Of a DNA stretch of 34,571 bases, positions 610-34,571 are shown piece after piece. Source of the stretch: Octopus bimaculoides. Its lineage: Eukaryota. The number at the start of each line of letters is the position of its first letter. The stretch's first letter is position 1. The position numbers and the translations under genes were made by a program. A model generated the notes under the pieces. The model searched no databases and had not been told where the DNA came from. It saw only the letters and a program-made list of their open reading frames with translations. The stretch lies in assembly GCF_001194135.2 (NCBI RefSeq), contig NC_068988.1:71744640-71779210 (forward strand). The letters are read 5' to 3'.

Positions 610-3060
610 CTGCTATTTTTCGGGCACCTTCCAGAGTATTCGATAGGTTCCAAGCAGTGCTGTTTTCTGCAAGTGCTCCACCCTTATTGCAGCCCCTATT
701 TGTTCTACGTACTTCTTGAAATTTTTGCTCACTGTTCCCAGGGCTCCGACAACTATTGGTACTACTGCTACCTTTTTCCTCGACCACAGCTGCTTAACTT
801 CCCAAGCTAACCTGTCATATCTCTCGACTTTTCTTTCTTCCTTATCGCATACCTTGTTGTCGGCTGGGCATACTATATCTATGATCCAGCATAGTTTGCT
901 TCCTATTCTCTATCTCATGGTCGCACTGAATCATAAAATCCCATAGGATCTTTGCATACCAATAGTCGTACCAATTGTTTGCTCTGTCAAGTCCATACTT
1001 GTTGCAAAGTGTCCTATGGACAAGCCTGGTTATATTGTCGTGGCGTCTCTTATATTCCTTCTGAGGTAGTGGCGTACATTGGCTGGTAATATGCCATACG
1101 GTTTCACTGTTCTGTCCACAGATTCTGCACTTATCACTTTCTGCTTTGTTGTCTATTCTGTATTTTATGTAATTTGTTCTTAGGCAGCACAAATTAGAGC
1201 CTCCGTTTCCGGTTTTAAATCACTTTTAGTCAAACACAGTTATCTCTTTTCTCTGTCTGTCTTATCTTCAACATCCCTATGAAATTGGCCATGCATTCTT
1301 TTCTTTACCCACCTATTTTCAGTTTCATTCGTTTTCAATTTCTTGTATAGTGCGTTATCTTTGCAATCTTTCACCCTACACAAGCCTGACCTTCTCACTT
1401 CTAATAATAGCGGTTCTGTGGCATTTTTTACATATCATGCTAGTTGTTTCTTCTGCTCTAATGTTGCGTTCGCATCCAATAAGTCCTCTTCCCCTTCTTT
1501 TTCTTGGCACATACAGTCTGTCTATGTCACTTTTTGGATGGAGTGACCCATATCTAGTTAGCAACTTCCTTGTCTTTCTGTCTAAGCAGTTTAGTTCGAA
1601 TACTGTCCATGCGATTACCCCTGCTCCATATCTAAGGAGTGAAACCAGCCAGGTGTTGATAGCTTCGATCTTATTCCGTCCGTTTAATTTCGACTTAAGG
1701 ATCAGTCTGAGTCTGCGAGGTATTCCGCCTTAAATTTTTCTCTCATTTCTTTCTCCATCAATTTATTCATTTCCAAAATCCCCAAGTACTTATAGCTCGT
1801 CTCTTCTATCTGCTTCATAACCTACCCTGACGGTATCGTTAGCCCGTCCATACATTTGATTTTGCCTCTCTTAAAGACTAATACACCACACTTTTGCAGC
1901 CCGAACTCCATTCTGATATCAGCATTGACGGTATACACCGTATCAGCGAGGGAACTGACTTGGGTTTCATCTTTACCATAAAGTTTGAGGTTATCCATGA
2001 ATAAAAAATGGTTGACTCTTTGTTGGCGGCTTTTGAATACATACCCAGCTTTTGCTTTCCTCATAATCAGTGTTAGTGGTATCAAGCACAGTACAAAGAT
2101 CAGTGGGGACAGGCAGTCCCCTTGGAAGATGCCCTTCCTCATTTCTACTGTCCCTAAACTTCTTCGGTATGCTGTCAAGTCCGTCCTCCAATTCGCCATA
2201 CTTTTTGCAAGCAATCGCTCAACATTCGACACAATACCAAATAGGTTCATACACTCCATAATCCAAGAATGTGGGACTATATCGTACGCCTTACGATAGT
2301 CGATCCATGACATGGCTAAGTTACTTTACCTCTTCTTGCAGTCTCTAAGTACGGTTTTATCTATCAGGAGTTGATCCTTGGTACTTCTGCACTTACGCTT
2401 GCAACCCTTATGCTCATGTGGCAGGACTCCATTTTTTCAAGATGTTCTGCGAGTATTCCAGTTAATATCTTCTACATAAGTGGTATACAGGATATCGGCC
2501 TGTAATCGTCTACCGTATTGCCTTTTTCGATGTTTTTCCTACCCAATGTCAACCACTCTGGTGTTACTTGGTCAGCATTTAACAAGGTGTTGAGCTGCGC
2601 AGCTATTCGTGCATGACATTTACCAAATCTTTTGATCCAGTAACCTTGAACTCCATCTGGTCACGGGGCCTTCCAGTTGTTCATTCTTCTGCTGATTTCC
2701 TTTACTTTCCTAACTGAAATGACTAGTTCCTCTTGTTTTGGACAGACTACTGCTTGTTTCAGTTCTTGCAATCATTCAGCATCATTCTTGTGCTCTTTGT
2801 CTTTGCTCCAGATGTCACTCCAAAAACTTTGACTTTCAATGTTATCTGATATTAACTTTTCATCTGTACACTCTCCATTTATTTCTTTATAGAATCTCTT
2901 CTGATCTACTCTGAATAACCTATTCTGGTGGTAACCCTTCATTCTTTGGTTGTACCTTACCATCTTTGCTTTCTTTGCAACGAGGCGCTCTTTCAGTTCT
3001 TCCATTACTACTTTCAGGCCCTTTCTTACAATATTATACTTCCTTATCAGCGCCCTGTGC
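610..3060 (-). mobile_element. Dong/R4-clade non-LTR retrotransposon, 5'-truncated and degenerate (copy A: RT, CCHC finger, restriction-like endonuclease end)
   Basis: Minus-strand fragments read in order: EELKERLVAKKAK..RLFRVDQKRFY; WLTLGR..DYRPISC; WIDYRKAYDIVPH..GIFQGDCLSPLIF..HFLFMDNLKLY (RT); HPKSDIDRLYVPRKRRGRGL; CRICGQNSETVWHITSQC (CCHC); KILWDF; LQKTALLG. Many stops and frameshifts. Confidence 0.9.
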
Positions 3061-3282
<222 letters not shown>

Positions 3283-3966
3283 AAGACGTCGCTCAGTATC
3301 CAATATCGTGATGTTGTTGATTGAAAATATTGTCTACCGGGGGTTTGCCTTTTCTGTCAAGTCAAGAATCTCAAACAGACAGTACATTACGCAATATGCG
3401 TGCAGTTCCAAGTAATGCCGATTTTGCAATTCACCTAGATTGTAAGGTATTTCTAAAGTTACCAGATGCTTTTTTTTCGGGATGGGTGGTATTGAACCCA
3501 ATACTCCCATGACAATTGGGACAACCTTTATGTTTGACTCACGTAGCTGCCACATCTTAGCAATCTCAATTCTTAGGTCTCCATATTTATCAATCTTTTC
3601 TTTTTCATTTATGATAATATGCTGATCTCCTGGCACGTCGATTATTAAGCTTTATTGTTTGTCATTCCTAATGGTTACTATATCCGGCCTTCTGTTCTCT
3701 AACACCTAGTCTGCCTGGAAGTCAGAGTCCTAGAGGATTTTTGCCTTCCCCTTTTCGTCCATTGCCCTTTCAGCTGTATGTTGGTACCAAGCACCCGTTA
3801 CCTCGTATCCATACTTCCAGCATAGTAGCCAGTGGAGGTTTGGGGCTTCCTTGTTGTCTCTGCGCTTATACTCTTTCTGCTTCTGCACTTTCCCAAACAC
3901 TAACAATGTGAGTCACGCTTTCGATTCTCTTCCCACACATTCAGCAGAAGTTCGTTGCACTTGTAT

Positions 3967-7479: not shown

Positions 7480-7537
7480 NNNNNNNNNNGTAGTAGTAGT
7501 AGTAGTAGTAGTAGTTGTTGTTGTTGTTGTTGTTGTT
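7430..7537. repeat. Compound (TA)n(TAG)n(TTG)n microsatellite containing a 10-N gap
   Basis: Direct reading; abuts the truncated 5' end of Dong copy C. Confidence 0.95.
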
Positions 7538-9045: not shown

Positions 9046-9110
9046 GAATTAAATTGAAATGTTATTATAAACTTAGCATTATTTTTTTCCTTGTCGACGG
9101 GTCATGTACT

Positions 9111-9153
9111 AGTAATAATAATAATTTTGATGATGATAATAATAATAATAATG

Positions 9154-9233
<80 letters not shown>

Positions 9234-9347
9234 AAGAAGAAGAAGAAGAAGAAGAAGAAGAAGAAGAAGAAGAAGAAGAAGAAGAAGAAGAAGAAGAAGA
9301 AGAAGAAGAAGAAGAAGAAGAAGAAGAAGAAGAAGAAGAAGAAGAAG
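9111..9347. repeat. Compound (AAT)n(AAG)n microsatellite
   Basis: Direct reading; source of the poly-N/K/R/S/L ORF artefacts. Confidence 0.98.
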
Positions 9348-9564
9348 CGCAGTCAGAGAGCGCAAACCTCCGCCAAGGCAACACCAACGTCCTCTCAATG
9401 ATTAGTCAGAAAAGATTTTTAAAATGAGAATATCTGAAATCAACTTGACTACTCTCACAAACGNNNNNNNNNNNNNNNNNNNNNNNNNNNNNNNNNNNNN
9501 NNNNNNNNNNNNNNNNNNNNNNNNNNNNNNNNNNNNNNNNNNNNNNNNNNNNNNNNNNNNNNNA

Positions 9565-9615: not shown

Positions 9616-10831
9616 GAATAGATAGGTGCATCGGTTAGGATGCGAAAGATGATTTATAGATTATTGATAGATAATTGATAGAATTCACTGAATAATAAAA
9701 AACTTGACAAATTCTACGAAACTAGAAAGATGCTGACCTATAAAAATAATAAACAACCAACTAATAGGACTAAGCCACCCTCTTACGCAACGCCTCCTGC
9801 TAACTTAGGTGCAGACCTGAACAATAATCCCCCCCCACCCACTACAACACGGACGTAAATACACCTAATTATTTATGTGGCTGTAGGGATAGAACAAAGT
9901 ACCATTTCTCAAATAGATGTAAGATTACGTAGACCAATGTGACGTCCGCACAAACAACCAGAAGAAATCATACATAGGTGCAACGAAGAACCAAATGACT
10001 CTCAGATATAACACGCATCTATCCAGCTTCAGAAATAGAAATAAGGCTAACTCAACAGGGCTAAGTGCATACATTTGGGAACTTAAGGACGAAAAAATTG
10101 ATTTTAGCTTAAACTGGCGTATACTCACAAAAACATCGTCCTACCACACCACAAATAGACGCTGCGATCTCTGCCAATCAGAATGCCTAGCTATACTTGC
10201 GGCTAAGCAACCACTTCTCAACAGGAAATTTGAGAATAACAATTATTGTCTTCCCGTGGGCCTTTATGTATTTTCGAAATACCGATAGAATAGCCTCTCT
10301 TGTCTTCATGCAGGCCTCTATGGCTTCATAACCCCAATCTAGAATACTCATCTATATAAGTCGAATTAACTGGGTAACACCTTAAACACACGAAGAGTCA
10401 GCAGCAAACCCACTCGACCCAAACATTTCATAATAATACACTTTGCATATACACAGGACCCCGTCAAGCACTAGGAACCTGCTAAACTCTAGCAATAGCA
10501 CATTTTCAAACCACTCATGAGTTAGCTCCCTTCTAACCCAGTTAGAGTTACACCCCTTCACCTGCACCACCAGTGTAACTAGCTCTAAAATTGAATAAAC
10601 ACGTGCGAATAAAATGTGCTTAATTAAACTTGGAATCACGCACCTCAATAATACTCAACTTACCCTAAGTTCCCAACGAAACTAAACAATCTACCACGAG
10701 CAAAACTCTACCCTGCGAATTTCCCAGCGCAAGAACAAAAATTTAATGTAAAAATTACCAATTTGTTTACATTACCATCAAATGTCTATCAATTATCTTA
10801 GGCATCCTGACGGATGCACCTATCTATATTC

Positions 10832-10866: not shown

Positions 10867-11111
10867 TTCTCTCATCTCTGCTTCTTCCTCCTCGTTATCT
10901 ATTTAATTAAAGACATACCAGCGAAAACAAGGAGTTTCCCATTGTTATTATATCTGTTTTCTTCTCCTATATAACCTAAACTCCGGTTTTCCAAACGAGC
11001 CACCTGCTAGTGTACAGCCTTACAAAAGACTGTACCTCCCCAGCTAATATCCAGGAGCGACGCTGGATTTAACTATCCCTTAGAGGTATTAAACCACTCT
11101 AGCTGATGCCT

Positions 11112-11117
11112 ACATAC

Positions 11118-11156
<39 letters not shown>

Positions 11157-11260
11157 TAGACATATATATGTACGTATATATGCATATACTCACATATTTT
11201 TATTATATACATATTTATATATATATACATAGGTATATACATATATAAACATTTATATAC

Positions 11261-11341
<81 letters not shown>

Positions 11342-11655
11342 TATATATATAGACATATATATATAGACATATATATATATATACGTATAGATATATATAT
11401 GTATAGATATATATATGTATATATATATACATATATATACATATATATATATACACACACATATATATATATCCATATATATACATATATTCATATACAC
11501 ACGTATATATACATATATATATAAACATATATATACATATATATATATCCATATATATACCTATATATACATACACATATATATATATACATATATATAT
11601 ATCCATATATATACCTATATATACATACACATATATATATATACATACATATATA
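11112..11655. repeat. Long degenerate (TA)n/(TATACA)-type low-complexity array
   Basis: Direct reading; generates the YI-rich ORF artefacts. Confidence 0.97.
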
Positions 11656-11752
11656 CCACGGGCTTCTTTCAGTTTCCGTCTACCAAATCCGCTCACAAGG
11701 CTTTGGTCGACCCGAGGCTATAGTAGAAGACACTTGACCAAATTGCCACGCT
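11656..11752 (-). mobile_element. Fragment of the abundant tRNA-derived SINE (same family as 29311-29718)
   Basis: CGGGCTTCTTTCAGTTTCCGTCTACCAAATCC..GGCTATAGTAGAAGACACTTG matches 29558-29650. Confidence 0.9.
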
Positions 11753-14689
11753 CGCGCGTTAATCATTATATAAGTTCCCACTTCTACTAGTACTACAACA
11801 AACACACACATACACACATAGCCGCCTGCCTCCACTGGGTGGCTATGAATATTTTGCCCTTGTACGTATGCCTCTACATGCACATGCATGTGTAGAGAGG
11901 CACGTATTACATACACAGGTAAAAACAACTAAAACGTGTTTCATCATTGGTTTGCTCACTTATAAGACATCTGAGATAAACAATAACAACAACAACAAAC
12001 ATTGAAGCATCAGTTTTCAATTACCCCTTCAACTTTCTGCTGCTGGTGGATTTATCATGTGTTATCTATTCACTGTTTAATCAGACTGGGCCATCTGAAT
12101 TTTAGGTTGTCGTTAACATTTTAATAGGTCGCTAGTCAGACTTGTAGACAAGTAATCCAGTGTACTACTGATAAAACTATTTGGATTAAGCATAACTCAT
12201 GTATCCTTTCGTCTTTAGAATGCAGCTCTTTAAAATGAGCTAAGATTTATTTACTTGATACATATTCCGATCAAAGTACCGGTGCTGTTGTATAACCCGA
12301 GCTAGTTGATGGTTGGATAAACTAATAAATTCATGTATTCATTTTGTACATTTATGCTCGCATTACTGAAATATGTTTTCCGAATATGTTACAGTATAAT
12401 CTGAGGAGGATCTGGATGCTGATGATTGCAAATCTTGCGACCAAGGTACCTTCATTGATAGGTAAAGGCAGGTAAAAGCAATGTAAAAAAAAAATTAAGT
12501 ATCTCTTAAGTATTAATGTAGGTTATTATGTTCTACTACCAAATAATCATATTTCTCAGAAAATAAACCCCAAAAGTAGATAACAGGTCATTGATATTGA
12601 TAAACTCTCTATTTGTAGCAGGATATTACACTTACATGAGATATTGTATCTTGCTTCAAGTAGACGGTTTGATTGTATAATAACATTCGCAATCTAAATC
12701 ACTATATTAATACAAAAAAAAAGAACATTTAAATAATACACACCACGCTACAAAACTACATCAAATTGTCTAAACATTATTCACATGCTCTTTAATCTCT
12801 TAATTATAGGATTGGCAACAGCAATAAACTTTGTGGACCGTCTCAAGTAGATTCTTATTCGTTTGATTTCAGTTGGAGCAGTTTTTGACATACTGAGCAA
12901 ATATCACCAGCCAATTGGATTTCTTGGGGAGGAAAGTTTGAATGCATGGTGTTAGAGGGTAGATAAAGAATGGGAGGTGAACGGAATAAGAGAAAATATC
13001 TGTGGCAAGTGGTACAAAATAAGCAATTGAAGAGTTCAAAATGAGAAAATACTTTTGCATTTGCAAGGGAAGGGTAGAGAAAAGAAAGTCATTGGCTATA
13101 ATTCATTGCCTGAATATGTCATTTTCAATTTGCTAAATGGCGATAGCTTGTATGCAAACAAGAATGCGTGTAGAAGTAACAATGACACTTTGATCAATGT
13201 TGCAATATGGACCTTAATTGACACTGATCAGAAAATAATAAAAGCTGAAGTATTCCTGGCACTTAGTCTTTTTAATTACTGAATCGTTACATATGTGTCA
13301 TCGCCATAAATGTATGACTTGTGTATTGCTCATGTAAAAGTTTATTGGAAACGCAAGGTTAACGTTTCCTACTAATAGGCAGATGCTTTTAGAGGAATCC
13401 TAGTAAACGAATGGCCCTTACTGCATTGCCTTCAAGACTAAAGATGAAGGACAAGGAATTGTCCAATTAAGATTTGAAGAGTATAGTAAATTTTTATTTA
13501 GGCACAAGATCATAAATTGTGGGAGTAAGAATCAATGTTTCTAATCTACTGCTGTACATCAATGGTAATAATTTCATGGACTCTGGGAAGATAAGAGACC
13601 AAATTGGTTCTGTCATTATTGAGCAAATACTGTTAAAGCTTTCACCTAAATGTCACATACCAAACTTTTCCACTCTACCAATTCTGCTAGAACCATATGC
13701 TACTGCAAATATGACCATTGTAAAAACGAAAAATGAAATATAAAAAGCACTTTTAGATAACTGAAGCTTCGTTTCTCTCCGAAAATAACACATCAACTAA
13801 CACAGAATATTCATGTCCCTGTAGTAAGGATCCACTACACATCATAAAGTTTTGTTAAATAAAGGCGAGCACTGGATAGAACTGGAGTTAAGATTTTAAA
13901 CTGTGGAACTATTTCCCTTTCCGGTTGAAAGAATTCAACTTCACTTATTCCACTAATTTCACTGGAATATGAATATCACTCTCCATGCACACAACACAAA
14001 ATATGTTACCTTTGTGAATAATGAAATTTTAAAAAAGGATTTTTCGTGAAATCTTAGAGTAACTTATTAAAACTATTGGATGTTAATTTCGTGCTTTCTT
14101 CGGTTTCTTTCAAATATTAAACTGTTGGGAATCGGTATTTAAAATCAAAAATGGGAATCCGGCCGAAACTCGAGAAAGAACACAATGCTGCGCCTCCATT
14201 TTTCAACCAGTGCCAAAAAACAGCACACATAGTAATATTTATATATATATATGGTTTTTCATGAAGAAAGTACAGTTGAATGATTGTTTTAATAGATAGA
14301 TGAATTCTATCAGTTTAAGGATGACCCTTACCCAACCCAGCAGCATTCATGACCAGTGAGGGAAGATATGAATTAAACCAACAATTAAAGTCGCATCATT
14401 TTTACGTCTTTCAAGTGTTAAATTGGCGCTCTCTAGGAAACACGTAATATCTGGCAAAGATAAAGTTATTGTTTCTAAGTTTGTTTTTCTAACAAAACGT
14501 GAGTTTAATTTTATCTTGGGTGTTTGTATTTTACAGGGACAAGATAGCAGGGAAAGGGGATACCGTTCGCTGATCTGGGGATTAGCACCACTGTGCGTTG
14601 TGCACGCGTGATCAGCATGATGTTGCTATGTATGCGTCAGTAGGTGTATCACACAGTGAAAGGAGGAACGACCATCGTGGAGTAGTAAG

Positions 14690-18459: not shown

Positions 18460-19624
18460 ATTAAAAATTATATTAAAACTATGTAAAGTGTGTGTTTTTT
18501 CCTTTTTTAATTTCTTATATATATTACAACTCAGCAGGTGAGGATAATCGAAATTCCACTTTTTCTGTTACTATATACATACATATANNNNNNNNNNNNN
18601 NNNNNNNNNNNNNNNNNNNNNNNNNNNNNNNNNNNNNNNNNNNNNNNNNNNNNNNNNNNNNNNNNNNNNNNNNNNNNNNNNNNNNNNNNNNNNNNNNNNN
18701 NNNNNNNNNNNNNNNNNNNNNNNNNNNNNNNNNNNNNNNNNNNNNNNNNNNNNNNNNNNNNNNNNNNNNNNNNNNNNNNNNNNNNNNNNNNNNNNNNNNN
18801 NNNNNNNNNNNNNNNNNNNNNNNNNNNNNNNNNNNNNNNNNNNNNNNNNNNNNNNNNNNNNNNNNNNNNNNNNNNNNNNNNNNNNNNNNNNNNNNNNNNN
18901 NNNNNNNNNNNNNNNNNNNNNNNNNNNNNNNNNNNNNNNNNNNNNNNNNNNNNNNNNNNNNNNNNNNNNNNNNNNNNNNNNNNNNNNNNNNNNNNNNNNN
19001 NNNNNNNNNNNNNNNNNNNNNNNNNNNNNNNNNNNNNNNNNNNNNNNNNNNNNNNNNNNNNNNNNNNNNNNNNNNNNNNNNNNNNNNNNNNNNNNNNNNN
19101 NNNNNNNNNNNNNNNNNNNNNNNNNNNNNNNNNNNNNNNNNNNNNNNNNNNNNNNNNNNNNNNNNNNNNNNNNNNNNNNNNNNNNNNNNNNNNNNNNNNN
19201 NNNNNNNNNNNNNNNNNNNNNNNNNNNNNNNNNNNNNNNNNNNNNNNNNNNNNNNNNNNNNNNNNNNNNNNNNNNNNNNNNNNNNNNNNNNNNNNNNNNN
19301 NNNNNNNNNNNNNNNNNNNNNNNNNNNNNNNNNNNNNNNNNNNNNNNNNNNNNNNNNNNNNNNNNNNNNNNNNNNNNNNNNNNNNNNNNNNNNNNNNNNN
19401 NNNNNNNNNNNNNNNNNNNNNNNNNNNNNNNNNNNNNNNNNNNNNNNNNNNNNNNNNNNNNNNNNNNNNNNNNNNNNNNNNNNNNNNNNNNNTTAACCTC
19501 ACAAAGAGGTGAAAGAAGAGAGACAGCATAGCGAAAGTTTTGGCTGACTGTCATCCTGTACTCCCCATTTGGCTGTGAAACTCAAGGACAAGAAAGAATA
19601 CAACGATCACCCATGTCCAATTTA

Positions 19625-21690: not shown

Positions 21691-21972
21691 TCATTGTTCT
21701 GGTCTTAACATCAGTTGGTAAGAATAGAAGTCATTTGACGACACCCTTTTGTTTGTAATTGGCTATCCTGTCGCAGGTTCAATCCGAGGAATATTAAAAT
21801 AATACCCATCTTGTCCATTCCACAGAATAAGATAATACTGGAGAGAAGAATGTGTCTGTGAAATACGTTTAAGGTTGTTATCTTGAACACGAATGAGAAT
21901 ATCATGATTTACAATGGGATCACAGGCAAGCACACAGAGTCACAGAGATAGGCTTCACGTATGCGTTAATGT

Positions 21973-22029
<57 letters not shown>

Positions 22030-22937
22030 NNNNNNNNNNNNNNNNNNNNNNNNNNNNNNNNNNNNNNNNNNNNNNNNNNNNNNNNNNNNNNNNNNNNNNN
22101 NNNNNNNNNNNNNNNNNNNNNNNNNNNNNNNNNNNNNNNNNNNNNNNNNNNNNNNNNNNNNNNNNNNNNNNNNNNNNNNNNNNNNNNNNNNNNNNNNNNN
22201 NNNNNNNNNNNNNNNNNNNNNNNNNNNNNNNNNNNNNNNNNNNNNNNNNNNNNNNNNNNNNNNNNNNNNNNNNNNNNNNNNNNNNNNNNNNNNNNNNNNN
22301 NNNNNNNNNNNNNNNNNNNNNNNNNNNNNNNNNNNNNNNNNNNNNNNNNNNNNNNNNNNNNNNNNNNNNNNNNNNNNNNNNNNNNNNNNNNNNNNNNNNN
22401 NNNNNNNNNNNNNNNNNNNNNNNNNNNNNNNNNNNNNNNNNNNNNNNNNNNNNNNNNNNNNNNNNNNNNNNNNNNNNNNNNNNNNNNNNNNNNNNNNNNN
22501 NNNNNNNNNNNNNNNNNNNNNNNNNNNNNNNNNNNNNNNNNNNNNNNNNNNNNNNNNNNNNNNNNNNNNNNNNNNNNNNNNNNNNNNNNNNNNNNNNNNN
22601 NNNNNNNNNNNNNNNNNNNNNNNNNNNNNNNNNNNNNNNNNNNNNNNNNNNNNNNNNNNNNNNNNNNNNNNNNNNNNNNNNNNNNNNNNNNNNNNNNNNN
22701 NNNNNNNNNNNNNNNNNNNNNNNNNNNNNNNNNNNNNNNNNNNNNNNNNNNNNNNNNNNNNNNNNNNNNNNNNNNNNNNNNNNNNNNNNNNNNNNNNNNN
22801 NNNNNNNNNNNNNNNNNNNNNNNNNNNNNNNNNNNNNNNNNNNNNNNNNNNNNNNNNNNNNNNNNNNNNNNNNNNNNNNNNNNNNNNNNNNNNNNNNNNN
22901 NNNNNNNNNNNNNNNNNNNNNNNNNNNNNNNNNNNNG

Positions 22938-28122: not shown

Positions 28123-28911
28123 TCCTGCTTTTTGTCCTAGCAGAAAATTAACTATTTTTAAGTCAACACATATGATCCACTCGTGCTCCCTATATTTGAT
28201 ATTCAGAACCTTTTCTATATGTTCATAGATTCCTTTTAATTTTATTGAGTGCCCAATCTGTGTCGAGCCGTAGAGATTGCCGTTATGCAACTATACACGC
28301 TTAAGACTTTTTTCGAACTGTCTAAAAATAAGCACCAATCATTTGCATCGTAAGTCTCAGCTCCGACCTGTAATAAACTAGGTATGTCGCAGCAATATAC
28401 TAAACTATCCCCTGTTCTAAGATATTTAAGTTCTTCACTTTCTCTGTAAAATGTAATTTATATGTTTGAAGTACCTCAGTTACAATTATATTTAGGTAAG
28501 TTATAGTATATCAGTGACTAAATTACGTAGTTTTATAAAATTATAAACTTTCCATTGGAACTTCAGAATCAGGACCTGATAGAGAAAAACCAATTAAAAA
28601 TTTGCGCTCAGCGCATCTATGTTACATAAGACAAGCTGTTAAATCTAATTCAATTGACAAAAATTGAAATTTGTTTCCCAGTGTTGTATTTACAAACTTC
28701 TTTATGAATAAATTAACCTATTTTATGATAACTGCCTTTTCTTTATCACATTTAGATATCTCTGGATGATAAAGCATGCTATAAGGGAAAACTGCCATCT
28801 GTGATGATTCAATAAATAGGTTTATGTAAGCAGAGATCAGCACTCCAGAAGTGGAAGTCCTGCATGAAACAAGGTAAGGAATTTATTTCTGAACAATATT
28901 GTGTTCTGTCG

Positions 28912-28970
28912 ATACTAACTTACTAAACTTATTGATACTAACTTACTGAACGATACTAACTTACTGAATA
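28912..28970. repeat. Three imperfect copies of GATACTAACTTACT(G)AA
   Basis: Direct reading. Confidence 0.85.
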
Positions 28971-29150
28971 TGAGTCATTAATTCAAAAGAGAAACACTAA
29001 TTTGTGTAGTGCAAATTCAGACATCTTAATCAGTTTCATCTGAAAAATGTTATCTTGAAGCTTTATACTGTGAATTCAATTCCGTTATAGGGGCTTGATT
29101 AAATCGCTTGAGAGGAAATTTAGTTTTAAATTGTCCCATTCCACCTAAAG

Positions 29151-29158
29151 TATAAATA
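29151..29158 (+). promoter_or_regulatory. Candidate TATA box (TATAAATA), ~1.6 kb upstream of the peptide coding exon
   Basis: Perfect consensus in non-repeat sequence, but the motif is common by chance in AT-rich DNA and no strong donor was found just downstream. Confidence 0.25.
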
Positions 29159-29310
29159 GCGACATTGATACAAAGTTATCTGCAATAGGCTAGCATCTTA
29201 TTCAACAGTTGATATGTCTCTCACTCGTCTAGTTCTGCAAAAGGCAATACTGCGTTACTATGGAAATCCATGATTTGCATAAGAATTAACTTTATCGACG
29301 TATAAGACTC

Positions 29311-29718
29311 TCTTTTTACTCTTTTACTTGTTTCAGTCATTTGACTGCGGCCATGCTGGAGCACCGCCTTTAGTCGAGCAAATCGACCCCAGGACTTATT
29401 CTTTGTAAGTCTAGTACTTATTCTATCGGTCTCTTTTGCTGAACCGCTAAGTTACCGGTAAGCAAACACACCAGCATCGGTTGTCAAGCGATGTTGGGGG
29501 TACAAACACAGACACACAAACACGCATACATATATATATACATAGACATATATACGACGAACTTCTTTCAGTTTCCGTCTACTAAATCCACTCACAAGTC
29601 TTTGGTCGGCCATAGGCTATAGTAGAAGACACTTGCCCAAGATGCCACGCAATGGGACTGAAGCCGGAACCATGTGGTTGGTAAGCAAGCTACTTAGCAC
29701 ACAGCCACTCTTGCGCCT
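29311..29718 (-). mobile_element. Full-length tRNA-derived SINE with an internal (TG/TA) microsatellite
   Basis: Minus strand begins AGGCGCAAGAGTGGCTGTG (A box), then GGCTTCAGTCCCA (B-box-like), TCTTGGGCAAGTGTCTTCTACTATAGCC, and ends in an AGTAAAAG-type tail. Other copies lie at 11656, 23280 and 33609. Confidence 0.93.
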
Positions 29719-30038
29719 AATTTTATTCGTAACCGTCTAAATTTATTCGTATAAGAATTAACTTTATCGACGGGATATGTGATTTCCTGTTTTGACATTT
29801 GTTGTAATATTCTGTCTCTGAGAAAGACATAAGTAATTACCGATCGTGCCTTCTCTAATTTATTATTTCTGTGTTGAAATGAGATATTTTATCACAGAAT
29901 ATTAGCTTTTCAATTATCCTTCAGTATAAATGAAGGTGGTGGAATTAACTGAAACATCAAACTTATTTAGTAATCCAGGATTTCTATAAATAACAAAGCT
30001 TACGAAATATTATTTGACGTGAAAATGCATAATCTTTC

Positions 30039-30094
30039 GTTTAACCAAAACATAATTCTGTTTAACCAAAACATAATTCTGTTTAACCAAAACA
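30039..30094. repeat. 21-bp tandem repeat (GTTTAACCAAAACATAATTCT), ~2.7 copies
   Basis: Direct reading. Confidence 0.92.
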
Positions 30095-30765
30095 AACTAT
30101 TATTATAATTAGCTTCACATGGGCTAAGTAAGTTATCGGTGGTTTAGTAATGATTCGAATTTCAGAAAATACTTTGCAAAAATTCATGAGAAAAACAGAA
30201 ATGTTACATAACAATATTTCTCCTACCTGTGATTTTTATTAATAAACTAACTGGGACGATGATGTAGCAGAGACGGTACACCTTATACAAAAAGTTGAAA
30301 GTCCTGTATATCATTTTTTTGTAACTGAGTTACAATATCTAAATTAATTGTTAGTAACTTTCGTCATACTAATGTCCTTGACAAAAGCATCAAGAACATA
30401 CCATTGCCTGTACACATTTTTCAGACATTCTGACAAGCATAACAATAATATTACTTTCAACTATTAATCGACCTTGTGGTGATTACTGTAGGGCAAGCTA
30501 TAACTTCTTTGCCAAATCAAAACGTTCCTTGATTCCACTTGCCTGTTTATTTAGAAATAAATTATGTAGCTAAATCGCTTAAATATCAAATTATTCCATT
30601 AATTCATCCCCTAAATCATAGTTTCTTCCGAGACCAAATATTCTTGTGCAGTGCAAATATGTAGAACTGTTTTTGTTCGAGTTTAATTTTCCGAGTTTTT
30701 AACAATTGAAATAGTATTTAGAAGATAATCTTTTTCTCTTCATTTAATTTGTTCCAGAAACAATA

Positions 30766-30859
30766 ATGAAGGTTGTGTGTATATTTTTGCTGGTTTTGTT
30801 GCCATTGGCAATGGCAACTGTGTCCCTATATGACGAGGATGTCGATAAGAGATTTTCTT
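30766..30859 (+). CDS. Secreted peptide precursor, coding exon 1 (MKVVCIFLLVLLPLAMA-TVSLYDEDVDKR-FS, phase-1 end)
   Basis: Strong acceptor TCTTTTTCTCTTCATTTAATTTGTTCCAG ending at 30757; ATG with A at -3; textbook signal peptide ending A-M-A; acidic spacer followed by KR; donor T|GTAAGT at 30860. Confidence 0.8.
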
Positions 30860-30916
30860 GTAAGTTGTTGTCATTTCATTACACTTGAACATATTTCTAT
30901 TTAAAGTTATCTACAG

Positions 30917-30963
30917 GTGAACGAATCTACAAGCATGACTTCTTTTGTAAACTTTTATTCTGA
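30917..30963 (+). CDS. Secreted peptide precursor, putative coding exon 2 (C-ERIYKHDFFCKLLF-stop)
   Basis: A 57-nt GT..CTACAG intron (30860-30916) gives split codon T+GT = Cys, pairing with a second Cys; TGA at 30961-30963. Confidence 0.62.
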
Positions 30964-32144
30964 AAGTACCCTTGAAAAGTTCCAAACACCGCCTTTTGTT
31001 ATCGACAATTCACCTAAACATCTNNNNNNNNNNNNNNNNNNNNNNNNNNNNNNNNNNNNNNNNNNNNNNNNNNNNNNNNNNNNNNNNNNNNNNNNNNNNN
31101 NNNNNNNNNNNNNNNNNNNNNNNNNNNNNNNNNNNNNNNNNNNNNNNNNNNNNNNNNNNNNNNNNNNNNNNNNNNNNNNNNNNNNNNNNNNNNNNNNNNN
31201 NNNNNNNNNNNNNNNNNNNNNNNNNNNNNNNNNNNNNNNNNNNNNNNNNNNNNNNNNNNNNNNNNNNNNNNNNNNNNNNNNNNNNNNNNNNNNNNNNNNN
31301 NNNNNNNNNNNNNNNNNNNNNNNNNNNNNNNNNNNNNNNNNNNNNNNNNNNNNNNNNNNNNNNNNNNNNNNNNNNNNNNNNNNNNNNNNNNNNNNNNNNN
31401 NNNNNNNNNNNNNNNNNNNNNNNNNNNNNNNNNNNNNNNNNNNNNNNNNNNNNNNNNNNNNNNNNNNNNNNNNNNNNNNNNNNNNNNNNNNNNNNNNNNN
31501 NNNNNNNNNNNNNNNNNNNNNNNNNNNNNNNNNNNNNNNNNNNNNNNNNNNNNNNNNNNNNNNNNNNNNNNNNNNNNNNNNNNNNNNNNNNNNNNNNNNN
31601 NNNNNNNNNNNNNNNNNNNNNNNNNNNNNNNNNNNNNNNNNNNNNNNNNNNNNNNNNNNNNNNNNNNNNNNNNNNNNNNNNNNNNNNNNNNNNNNNNNNN
31701 NNNNNNNNNNNNNNNNNNNNNNNNNNNNNNNNNNNNNNNNNNNNNNNNNNNNNNNNNNNNNNNNNNNNNNNNNNNNNNNNNNNNNNNNNNNNNNNNNNNN
31801 NNNNNNNNNNNNNNNNNNNNNNNNNNNNNNNNNNNNNNNNNNNNNNNNNNNNNNNNNNNNNNNNNNNNNNNNNNNNNNNNNNNNNNNNNNNNNNNNNNNN
31901 NNNNNNNNNNNNNNNNNNNNNNNNNNNNNNNNNNNNNNNNNNNNNNNNNNNNNNNNNNNNNNNNNNNNNNNNNNNNNNNNNNNNNNNNNNNNCAGGATCA
32001 ATGTAGCTTAAAATCACAAAAATTATGTAACGCAAATTCCCCAGATCTCAGATAAGATTAAATTTATAACCATTTTGAGTCACTAGGCAATTATTGAAGA
32101 AATTTTGGCTAAGTATTCGGTTTGCTATTATTAATGTTGTCATT

Positions 32145-32830
32145 GTCATTGCTTACTTAAGTATTAATAAGGGCAATCGATTTCTGATCAATATATCGCT
32201 GATCACCCCCACACATTTCTCCACAGTAAAATCAACATCAATGGACGGGTATAGGGACACTACGCCCATGCTGCCTATAATGTGTCCCGTCAGGTCGTAG
32301 GCATCGTTGCACTCTTTGATTCTGCTGAGGAGGTCCTGTTACTGACAACATTGGCTCTGCAGACCGGTCTCGTCGGTGGTCCTGTTACTGGGTCAGTGAT
32401 CATCTTATGGTCCTTGCGCAGTCCATACAGTGCCGGGATGTCGTTGTGGCCTGGACGTTGTTGGCCGTGTGCTTCTTTGTCCCAAGGATGTTTGACCACA
32501 TCATCATATGAGCATTGAGGATCTTCTCTGTCTCCTCATACTCCCGTATCGTTGTTTCCCTAATATCGATGATGTGGGGTTGCATCGCCTGGATGTAGTT
32601 CGGTAGGTTGTCAACCGACATTCTGCTAGACTTGTCCGTGGAGAAGCCTACAACTTCACTATTTCTAGTGTGCTTGCGAAGGCCACCTGTAGACTTCTTG
32701 CAGAGTTGCTGTGCCTCACTACCACTCCGTCTACTAGTATATTGTTCTAAAATCTATATAATTTTAGTGTTGGCTATGATGAAGCGTGCTTCTATTTCGT
32801 CATTTGTCTGTTGAAGGATGCAAACTCTTT
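32145..32830 (-). mobile_element. Penelope-like element RT fragment, degenerate and internally deleted
   Basis: Minus strand: STDKSSRMSVDN..NYIQAMQPH; LYGLRKDHK..GPPTRPVC; IIGSMGVVSLYPSID (the D-x-x-S-L-Y-P RT motif with Asp replaced by Gly). Confidence 0.82.
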
Positions 32831-33049
32831 TGTTGAGGGGAAAGGTTGTCGATAAATAAGGCTCATATCATATGATATATCTCATGGATTGAAGAATAGG
32901 GACTGAAAAGGGTTAGTATCATTTATACCCGTTGTACTGCTATCTATCATAACATTTCTGAATGGGGTGAGAGGATAGAGCCGAGGGGAAGGCCATACTG
33001 CTGCAAAGAACAGTGACATACACATACAAGCATACACATACACTCACAT

Positions 33050-33052
33050 GCA

Positions 33053-33092
<40 letters not shown>
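33050..33092. repeat. (CA)n microsatellite
   Basis: Direct reading. Confidence 0.95.
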
Positions 33093-33096
<4 letters not shown>

Positions 33097-33608
33097 CGGA
33101 CACAAGCGCATGCGCACATAAGGATACACATCTCAGAAGAACAGAATGGAGTAATTGGAGCAAGAGCACACACGAAAACGAAAAGTGTCGCTGAAGAGGT
33201 CACAGATGTGTGACAAAAGATTTCCAGACAATGAACATGAGTTAAAATGAAAGAAAAATAAGAACAGTAATAAACGAGTGAAGAACAAATATGTAGTATT
33301 TATTTAGTAAAAAAAAATATATAATCGTCCCGAAATGCAACAATATATGTATATGAGGGAATATCAATCCGGGCAAAATACTTTGTAAGCCCTCTGTTAG
33401 TGCACTATGCTAACAATATTGCTCGTCTGGTGTATTGAAGTAAAGAACTCCACATATACTTTTGGCAGGGTCCGAGGTTATAGTTCATCACCATTCTATA
33501 TTGTAAATCCATGGTTGTGTTCCACGTATGCTGGATTTTACAGTGATATACAAGGCATAAATAATTTTTATGAATTTTAAATTTTCAATGCTCTTTTACT
33601 TGCTTATT

Positions 33609-33972
33609 ATTTTACTTGTTTCAGTCATTTTTATTGTGGCCATGCTGGAGCACCGCCTTTTAGTCGAACAAATCGACCCCTGAACTTCTTCTTTGTAAGC
33701 CTGGTACTTATTCTATCGGTTTCTTTTGCCGAAACGCTAAGTTACGGAGATGTAAACACACCAGCATGGGTTGTCAAGCTGTGGTGGGGGACAAACACAG
33801 ACACAAACACACACATACATACATACATACATACATACATACATGCATGCATACATACATATACAACGGACTTCTTTCAGTTTCCGTCTACCAAATCCAC
33901 TCACAAGGTGCCTCACAGTGGGACTGAACCCGGAACCATGTGGTTGGGAAGCAACCTTCTTACCACACTGCC
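33609..33972 (-). mobile_element. tRNA-derived SINE copy with an internal deletion
   Basis: Collinear with 29320-29710 but missing ~43 nt after CACAAGG (33908), most simply by loss between two CAAG(G) motifs. Confidence 0.92.
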
Positions 33973-34446
33973 ACTGCCACTGCCACACCTGCGCTTGCTT
34001 TTAATATTTTTTAAGTTTTAATTTTTCAATGTTTTAATTTTTTGAAAATTCTTTCCATTTAATTTAATTCACAATTATGTTTCGCCTTCAATTTTATGTA
34101 GTTTTAGGATAACTTTTATTTTATTTTAGTTTAGTTATTAGCATCACATTTCCCCCTCTATCTCTATTTGATATCCACTCTCACCAAAGCTTTCTCTACA
34201 TTCACATCATAATGTTGTTACTGCTAAGTTTTCATTCAGTTTTTTTTCTAATACATTTCACTTCTGCTGTGAGATGGTACGAATGACCAAATATTAAAGA
34301 TTTAAGTTGACCATGATAGTAAGTGGCCTATATCGAATTTTAATACAATATCTGGATAGTATATGACCTGAAGACAATATATTTTTGTGTGTGATGACTC
34401 ATGTACAAACACTAATGTCCTTATGATTATCCCTTCCTCTTTACAG

Positions 34447-34556
34447 ACGAAGAGCTATGCTCGAAATCTCAAATTCTCTCTTTTCACCGAGCGTCATGCA
34501 AAAAACATTCCTTGTGCAGTCCACTTCTTGTCTGTTATGCACACTCATTTATTTGA
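34447..34556 (+). CDS. Candidate exon after a strong acceptor; the phase-1 frame encodes a 4-Cys segment (xEELCSKSQILSFHRASCKKHSLCSPLLVCYAHSFI-stop)
   Basis: Branch-like ACTAAT, polypyrimidine tract CCCTTCCTCTTTACAG ending at 34446. All three frames are open for ~110 nt, so the frame is not diagnostic. Confidence 0.3.
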
Positions 34557-34571
34557 ATTGACTATATATAT

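Follow-up and report, generated by a model that had tools for sequence, protein, structure and literature searches.

The locus described here lies on contig NC_068988.1 of Octopus bimaculoides (NCBI RefSeq assembly GCF_001194135.2, positions 71,744,640 to 71,779,210 of the forward strand), and by "the window" we mean this whole stretch of 34,571 nucleotides. Toward its 3' end the plus strand carries the first part of a gene for a predicted secreted-peptide precursor, which is already annotated as the protein A0A0L8IA49 and is uncharacterised. The features that matter for what follows are:

28780-28786, plus strand: TATAAGG, a TATA-like sequence about 80 nt upstream of the donor of the 5' exon, identical in O. 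vulgaris and a possible core promoter
28864-28873, plus strand: 3' end of the 5' exon (ATGAAACAAG), located by a match to ATGAARCARGGT; the start of this exon is undefined
28874-30757, plus strand: intron 1 (GTAAGG ... TTCCAG), with donor and acceptor conserved in O. vulgaris
30758-30859, plus strand: coding exon located by tblastn, with a 5' leader, start codon, signal peptide, propeptide, KR and the first mature residues, ending in phase 1
30766-30816, plus strand: conserved start codon and predicted signal peptide MKVVCIFLLVLLPLAMA; homologues begin with MK and a hydrophobic core
30817-30852, plus strand: acidic propeptide TVSLYDEDVD followed by KR (TVSLYDEDVDKR), with the R invariant in the family alignment
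30860-30865, plus strand: GTAAGT, the phase-1 donor with which intron 2 begins; the O. vulgaris orthologue and two paralogues have kept it
30860-34571, plus strand: intron 2, running past the end of the window, with an N gap (31024-31992), interspersed repeats and microsatellites inside it
30917-30963, plus strand: the second exon proposed in an earlier note (CERIYKHDFFCKLLF*), an open frame of 15 codons

The surroundings are rich in repeats and in A and T, and are interrupted by five N gaps (7480-7489, 9464-9563, 18588-19492, 22030-22936 and 31024-31992); neither a tRNA scan nor an Rfam scan found anything in the window. Retroelement fragments occupy 842-3636 on the minus strand, where the ORF at 1822-2313 matches the Pfam reverse transcriptase RVT_1 (E = 7.5e-12); no Pfam match was obtained for the neighbouring minus-strand ORFs at 842-1192 and at 3334-3636, which may be further remnants of that decayed element. 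An interspersed repeat is present at 29314-29715 and 33611-33974, and the O. vulgaris locus has several copies of it in either orientation (L001 13497-13926 and 15590-15876 among them). The copies are 71-86% identical; the repeat is probably a SINE-like element, and ARAGORN found no tRNA-like head in it. Low-complexity and microsatellite tracts at 9100-9400, 11100-11720, 21960-22030, 33040-33100 and 33790-33870 are A/AAG-rich, TA/TATG-rich, (GT)n/(AC)n or (TACA)n, and some of them adjoin assembly gaps. On the plus strand, an ORF of 97 aa at 9995-10288 (…LSAYIWELKDEKIDFSLNWRILTKTSSYHTTNRRCDLCQSECLAILAA…) includes a Cys-containing motif, has no Pfam match and is possibly a transposon-derived fragment.

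The earlier note, made from the letters of this DNA, had proposed a hidden two-exon gene at 30758-30963 for a small secreted peptide with a disulfide loop. Every feature it described can be confirmed in the plus-strand sequence: an AG acceptor at 30756-30757, an ATG at 30766, a GTAAGT donor at 30860-30865, a CTACAG acceptor ending at 30916 and a TGA stop at 30961-30963. Joining 30766-30859 to 30917-30963 yields the 46-aa product it gave, MKVVCIFLLVLLPLAMATVSLYDEDVDKRFSCERIYKHDFFCKLLF. Its statement that the first mature Cys is created only by the splice junction is wrong, because the GT of the donor supplies the last two bases of a TGT codon (T|GT) and the unspliced frame thus reads Cys at the same place (…KRFSCKLLSFHYT*).

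A search with this 46-mer against 5.8 billion protein sequences returned a single match (E = 3.4e-10), A0A0L8IA49, an 80-aa "uncharacterized protein" of O. bimaculoides. The two sequences are 100% identical over the 31 residues from the first exon and unrelated afterwards, and tblastn places residues 4-37 of A0A0L8IA49 at window positions 30757-30858, again at 100% identity. The annotated protein reads MKQETI-MKVVCIFLLVLLPLAMATVSLYDEDVDKRFS-LSDLLDKLRNLDLSNGCEKVCSAITGGFWEFLCPTACGLLVGN; its gene model uses both the acceptor at 30757 and the donor at 30860, and the exon to which that donor is joined encodes LSDLLDKLRNLDLSNGCEKVCSAITGGFWEFLCPTACGLLVGN. By sequence comparison the exon at 30758-30859 is far beyond chance and is conserved in O. 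vulgaris, where its counterpart (10001-10094 of the orthologous locus, L001) ends in the same phase and in the same GTAAGT donor. Taken as a whole, the comparisons make it very likely that the A0A0L8IA49 gene has its signal-peptide and propeptide exon at 30758-30859 and that 30917-30963 is part of an intron.

The elements that the earlier note saw in its first exon (acceptor, ATG, signal peptide, acidic propiece, KR and GTAAGT donor) belong to a real gene, and the kind of product it proposed was right as well: the annotated protein is by prediction a small secreted peptide with Cys residues downstream of a dibasic site that could form disulfides. The gene is not hidden, since it is already in UniProt, and it does not consist of two exons. 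A 5' exon ending at 28873 precedes the signal exon, which is followed by an exon of 115 nt and a short last exon. An exact-sequence look-up of the A0A0L8IA49 protein in the assembly index gave no record. A0A0L8IA49 comes from a gene model of 2015 and we found no RefSeq protein for this exact gene, so the newer annotation may be without it.

The upstream exon of the model can be located through ATGAARCARGGT, which has a unique match in the window (0 expected by chance) and reproduces MKQ and the first base of E of A0A0L8IA49. At ATGAAACAAG|GTAAGG this exon contributes an in-frame ATG at 28864; the added MKQ(E)TI that results is confined to the O. bimaculoides model. The corresponding codon (28864-28866) is ATC in O. 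vulgaris (L001 ~8516), and for this reason the 5' exon is probably 5' UTR. Judged from the homologues, all of which begin with MK at this point, the conserved start is the ATG at 30766, which gives a precursor of 74 aa, and the N-terminal extension of A0A0L8IA49 is probably species-specific or a choice of the annotation. The acceptor of intron 1 has a pyrimidine fraction of 0.76 and a run of 13 pyrimidines, with no upstream AG. Within the signal peptide, MKVVCIFLLVLLPLAMA combines a hydrophobic core of 12 residues with A-x-A at positions -3 and -1, and cleavage would be expected after AMA, at about 17 residues, as read from the sequence.

The remaining part of the protein is encoded farther downstream. 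By tblastn, the C-terminal 43 residues of A0A0L8IA49 have no match in the window. The exons could be solved exactly at three loci, the O. vulgaris orthologue L001 (77% identical in protein) and two paralogues, and all of them share one plan, in which a signal/propeptide exon ends in phase 1 at a GTAAG donor and is followed by an exon of 115 nt and by a last exon with 16-22 coding nt. The O. vulgaris orthologue is intact and has lost neither a splice site nor any of the four Cys, and its 115-nt exon (L001 14677-14791) lies 4582 nt downstream of the donor (~4.6 kb). L001 aligns colinearly with the window, at 88-92% identity (window 32015-32336 corresponds to L001 10722-11040, and 33947-34169 to 12547-12749), which would place the partner exon roughly 1.5 kb past the last window position, 34571. 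Opposite the N gap at 31024-31992, O. vulgaris has only 454 nt, and no exon in them. With no tblastn match in the window and an exon-free counterpart to the gap, we consider the partner exon absent from both; the 115-nt exon, verified at three loci, lies outside the window in the O. bimaculoides gene, and the splice partner of the 30860 donor in this species is assigned from the 2015 gene model and homology.

A0A0L8IA49 belongs to a family of small molluscan proteins. A full HMMER scan with A0A0L8IA49 as the query, over 1.84 billion cluster representatives, gave 12 matches, of which 11 are true relatives; the other, a repeat protein of 528 aa (P0009), is unlike the rest and was discarded as spurious. 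A profile search extended the set to 20 named proteins, all labelled uncharacterised or hypothetical: six from O. bimaculoides, three from O. vulgaris, one from Argonauta hians and the rest from bivalves (Magallana gigas, Crassostrea virginica, Saccostrea, Ostrea edulis and Mactra). Both the junction next to KR and a CX3C-X11-CX3C motif are found again in some 25 octopod and bivalve homologues, among them A0A0L8FGZ6, A0A0L8GVS8, LOC106874479 of O. bimaculoides, K1QRH5 and A0A8W8NII5 of Magallana gigas, and LOC111127623 of Crassostrea virginica; O. bimaculoides itself has at least six paralogues. In an alignment of 19 sequences, M1, K2, the R of KR, the four Cys and one Ala are invariant and the K of KR is nearly so. 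The Cys spacing is 3-11-3 in 18 of the 19 (X10 in the remaining one), and a dibasic site precedes the Cys domain in every one.

The window exon fits this family closely. The initial MK with its hydrophobic signal is found at 30766-30816, the KR after a short acidic propiece at 30817-30852, and the phase-1 GTAAG donor follows two residues after KR, as in the cephalopod members. The four Cys with 3-11-3 spacing are present in annotated A0A0L8IA49, where they are encoded by the exon outside the window, and the whole order of signal peptide, propiece, dibasic site and Cys peptide is seen at the sequence level in A0A0L8IA49 and in all 19 aligned members. In the annotated protein and the cephalopod homologues, a donor of the 30860 type leads to an exon beginning (T)TG/TA…, which gives the junction KRFS|LSDL; the junctions of the closest homologues are KRFS|LSDL, KRFS|LGEL and KRFS|IDDI.

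Other members show features of their own. In a Logan contig (SRR24489187_12050, here L002) that encodes an oyster-like member (P0021), the signal/propeptide region and the Cys domain form one uninterrupted exon at 1722-1945, with an acceptor-like tttttttttcag in front; its ORF ends at a phase-2 GTAAAT donor directly after "ACST", at the position of the last intron of the octopus genes. From this matching position, the last intron appears to be common to bivalves and cephalopods, and the intron after KR appears either to be restricted to cephalopods or to have been lost in the lineage of L002. The Crassostrea virginica proteins from LOC111127623 and LOC111125810 (P0022-P0024) carry two to four tandem propeptide units of the SPPDISKR type, each ending in a dibasic site, and the copy number varies between isoforms. 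One protein of 346 aa (P0013) has two tandem mature four-Cys domains separated by RKR and fused to a long unrelated C-terminal region, which may be a chimera of gene prediction.

If the stretch at 30917-30963 were a genuine alternative 3'-terminal exon, a single signal/propeptide exon would serve two products, the four-Cys peptide and the C-X9-C 17-mer FSCERIYKHDFFCKLLF that the earlier note had taken for the mature peptide. The donor is real, the candidate acceptor has a canonical CAG and keeps the right phase, and the acceptor, both ring Cys with their C-X9-C spacing and most of the frame survive in O. vulgaris. We nevertheless regard such an isoform as highly unlikely. For the real exon there is no difference between the window and the corresponding part of A0A0L8IA49, whereas the 17-mer tail CERIYKHDFFCKLLF has no counterpart in any family member; no protein with this tail turned up in the databases searched (the 46-mer search of 5.8 billion sequences and the family profile search), and the paralogue introns contain no similar tail. 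Tails of this general kind are common. When the 122 usable AG dinucleotides downstream of the 30860 donor in the window are enumerated and read in the phase set by the donor, 37% open tails of 16 residues or more and 23% open tails with two or more Cys, and two paralogue introns likewise offer tails with two or three Cys (RPLYFETKVRCKICACATS, with three, and a 30-residue tail with two). The candidate acceptor at 30916 is also the weakest of nine that we compared, the other eight being mapped or annotated acceptors of the family:

Pyrimidine fraction, -20 to -4: 0.59 at the candidate acceptor; 0.76-1.00 at the eight family acceptors
Longest pyrimidine run: 5 nt at the candidate acceptor; 7-26 nt at the eight family acceptors
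AG upstream, -17 to -3: present at the candidate acceptor (30905-30906, 10 nt upstream); none at the eight family acceptors

The intron it implies is 57 nt long, against 599-4653 nt in seven mapped family introns. Comparison with O. vulgaris points the same way, giving the following identities:

30700-30757, upstream intron: 96.6%
30758-30859, real exon: 90.2%
30860-30916, proposed 57-nt intron: 94.4%
30917-30963, proposed mini-exon: 91.5%
30964-31023, the 60 nt after it: 93.2%

The mini-exon is thus no better conserved than the intron on either side of it (91.5% versus 93-97%). Its four substitutions all change the product and fall in three codons (H>D, L>S by two bases, and TGA>TGC), so that the O. 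vulgaris tail reads CERIYKDDFFCKSLFCKYP, without the stop and with an unpaired third Cys; neither the stop nor the even number of Cys is kept in the related genome. The earlier note had itself named the joining of the 30860 donor to a different exon as grounds for giving up its model, and as far as annotation and homology can show, the two-exon model fails on this point because the annotated protein and all cephalopod homologues join the donor to another exon. Its first exon stands, by complete identity to part of A0A0L8IA49; its second exon and the 17-mer very probably fall, on a chance-level tail and a weak acceptor. The sequence at 30917-30963 is most likely intronic, with an open frame that arose by chance. 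Two further accounts of the gene are less probable still. Retention of intron 2 would extend the frame 9 codons past the donor and give a 40-aa product (MKVV…KRFSCKLLSFHYT*), which would merely be that of an unprocessed transcript; against it, an exact-sequence look-up of this product in the assembly index gave no record and the TGA that ends it in O. bimaculoides is TGG in O. vulgaris, and we give it almost no credence. That the annotated gene is a prediction artefact or a pseudogene encoding nothing functional might be argued from a family that is uncharacterised and without a Pfam model, and from the single annotation source of A0A0L8IA49. The intact O. vulgaris orthologue, with its splice sites and four Cys retained, the cephalopod and bivalve members with invariant Cys and a conserved KR, and the intron position common to octopus and a bivalve contig leave this account only a very slight chance.

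Inside the same intron, the strongest acceptor-like site (cccttcctctttacag|ACGAAG, pyrimidine fraction 0.82) opens a frame at 34428-34560 with 36 codons in phase and five Cys, and no family member matches it. We take this frame as a chance occurrence that illustrates how easily such tails arise. The trap is a general one: in an AT-rich intron, short in-phase tails that contain two Cys commonly follow any real donor (23% of AG sites here). The 17-mer is unsuitable for synthesis or assay on present evidence, and it should not be made because it is most likely an intron artefact.

With the identity of the exon, its splice partner, the family and the conserved gene structure established, the course from gene to product can be proposed with some caution. 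The gene would run from a short 5' exon ending at 28873 to the signal/propeptide exon and, across the phase-1 intron that begins at 30860, to the 115-nt exon and a short last exon. The signal peptide would be removed, and a proprotein convertase would then cut after KR and release, in place of the proposed 17-mer, a peptide of about 45 residues, FSLSDLLDKLRNLDLSNGCEKVCSAITGGFWEFLCPTACGLLVGN, with four Cys in the CX3C-X11-CX3C pattern. These four invariant Cys would pair in two disulfides that staple two helices into a hairpin. Signal cleavage, KR cleavage and disulfide pairing are in this case all inferred from the A0A0L8IA49 sequence and its alignment. AlphaFold2, run on the family alignment, predicts helices at residues 32-41, 48-56 and 58-73, the last two of which span the two Cys pairs, with a moderate mean pLDDT of 63 that rises to 70-77 over the Cys region; Foldseek returned 0 matches for this model in the PDB.

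With net charges of -5 to 0, the mature family peptides are anionic; they are 41-58 aa long, and 10 of the 19 end in Gly, a possible amidation signal. Since they are anionic and half of them end in Gly, we would favour a role as secreted signalling peptides over that of classical cationic antimicrobial peptides. A more specific proposal, which we put forward tentatively and at less than even odds, is that they form an undescribed cephalopod-bivalve family of KR-cut, Cys-stapled and often amidated helical hairpins that act as a new neuropeptide, hormone or pheromone-type signal. The family of small, conserved, uncharacterised four-Cys secreted peptides of octopods and bivalves, with an exon plan fixed in three octopod genes, is a sensible target for expression mapping and peptidomics, and the 17-mer is not.

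The gene is annotated but unnamed. No name for the family came up in Pfam, in the PDB or in two catalogues of molluscan neuropeptides, and full-text literature searches gave none either; those with its accessions, gene IDs and peptide strings found no papers. Pfam gave nothing above noise for A0A0L8IA49, the 46-mer or all 19 members, the match of one member to Conotoxin (E = 0.19) being noise, and sequence searches of the PDB gave non-significant Cys-pattern matches only. Among molluscan peptides, the conchiferan proneuropeptide family PXRX, which has four Cys and a P[FM]R[WY] motif (De Oliveira et al. 2019, PMC6425005), is similar in being restricted to molluscs, in its four conserved Cys (two predicted disulfides) and in its prohormone-type precursor. 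The motif by which that family is described is absent from 19 of 19 aligned members, which sets the octopus and bivalve proteins apart from PXRX. Clionin was also rejected, as its ACLxCxxCF… is a different sequence with a different Cys pattern (alignment in the supplement of PMC8398477), and the peptide strings of the oyster members are absent from the oyster neuropeptide catalogue in that supplement.

In the PDB the family profile aligned best, though not significantly, with 7lvg, a vicilin-buried peptide of walnut (E = 1.1), followed by Grindelwald of Drosophila (E = 3.8), in each case in the CX3C-X11-CX3C register. Plant alpha-hairpinins and vicilin-buried peptides such as 7lvg (the Jug r 2 peptide) share this register column for column; they differ in their plant origin, in being cut from vicilin precursors and in being highly basic. 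The 7lvg match reflects the Cys pattern only and is no evidence of homology.

A comparable arrangement is known from the conotoxins vil14a and flf14a-c, which have framework XIV, I-IV/II-III connectivity and a Cs alpha/alpha fold (PMC4278219). No sequence homology to the Cs alpha/alpha toxins was detectable, and no PDB match was significant. The octopus and oyster peptides differ from these toxins in being longer (41-58 aa), anionic and equipped with an extra N-terminal helix in the predicted structure. The exact Cys spacing of the family probably matches that of flf14a. Like Cs alpha/alpha toxins of the vil14a, flf14a-c and kappa-hefutoxin type, the octopus and bivalve peptides are small and, by prediction, secreted, carry four Cys in a twin CX3C and may fold as a helical hairpin, the predicted helices spanning both Cys pairs in a model of moderate confidence; the resemblance would be one of pattern and fold rather than of shown homology.
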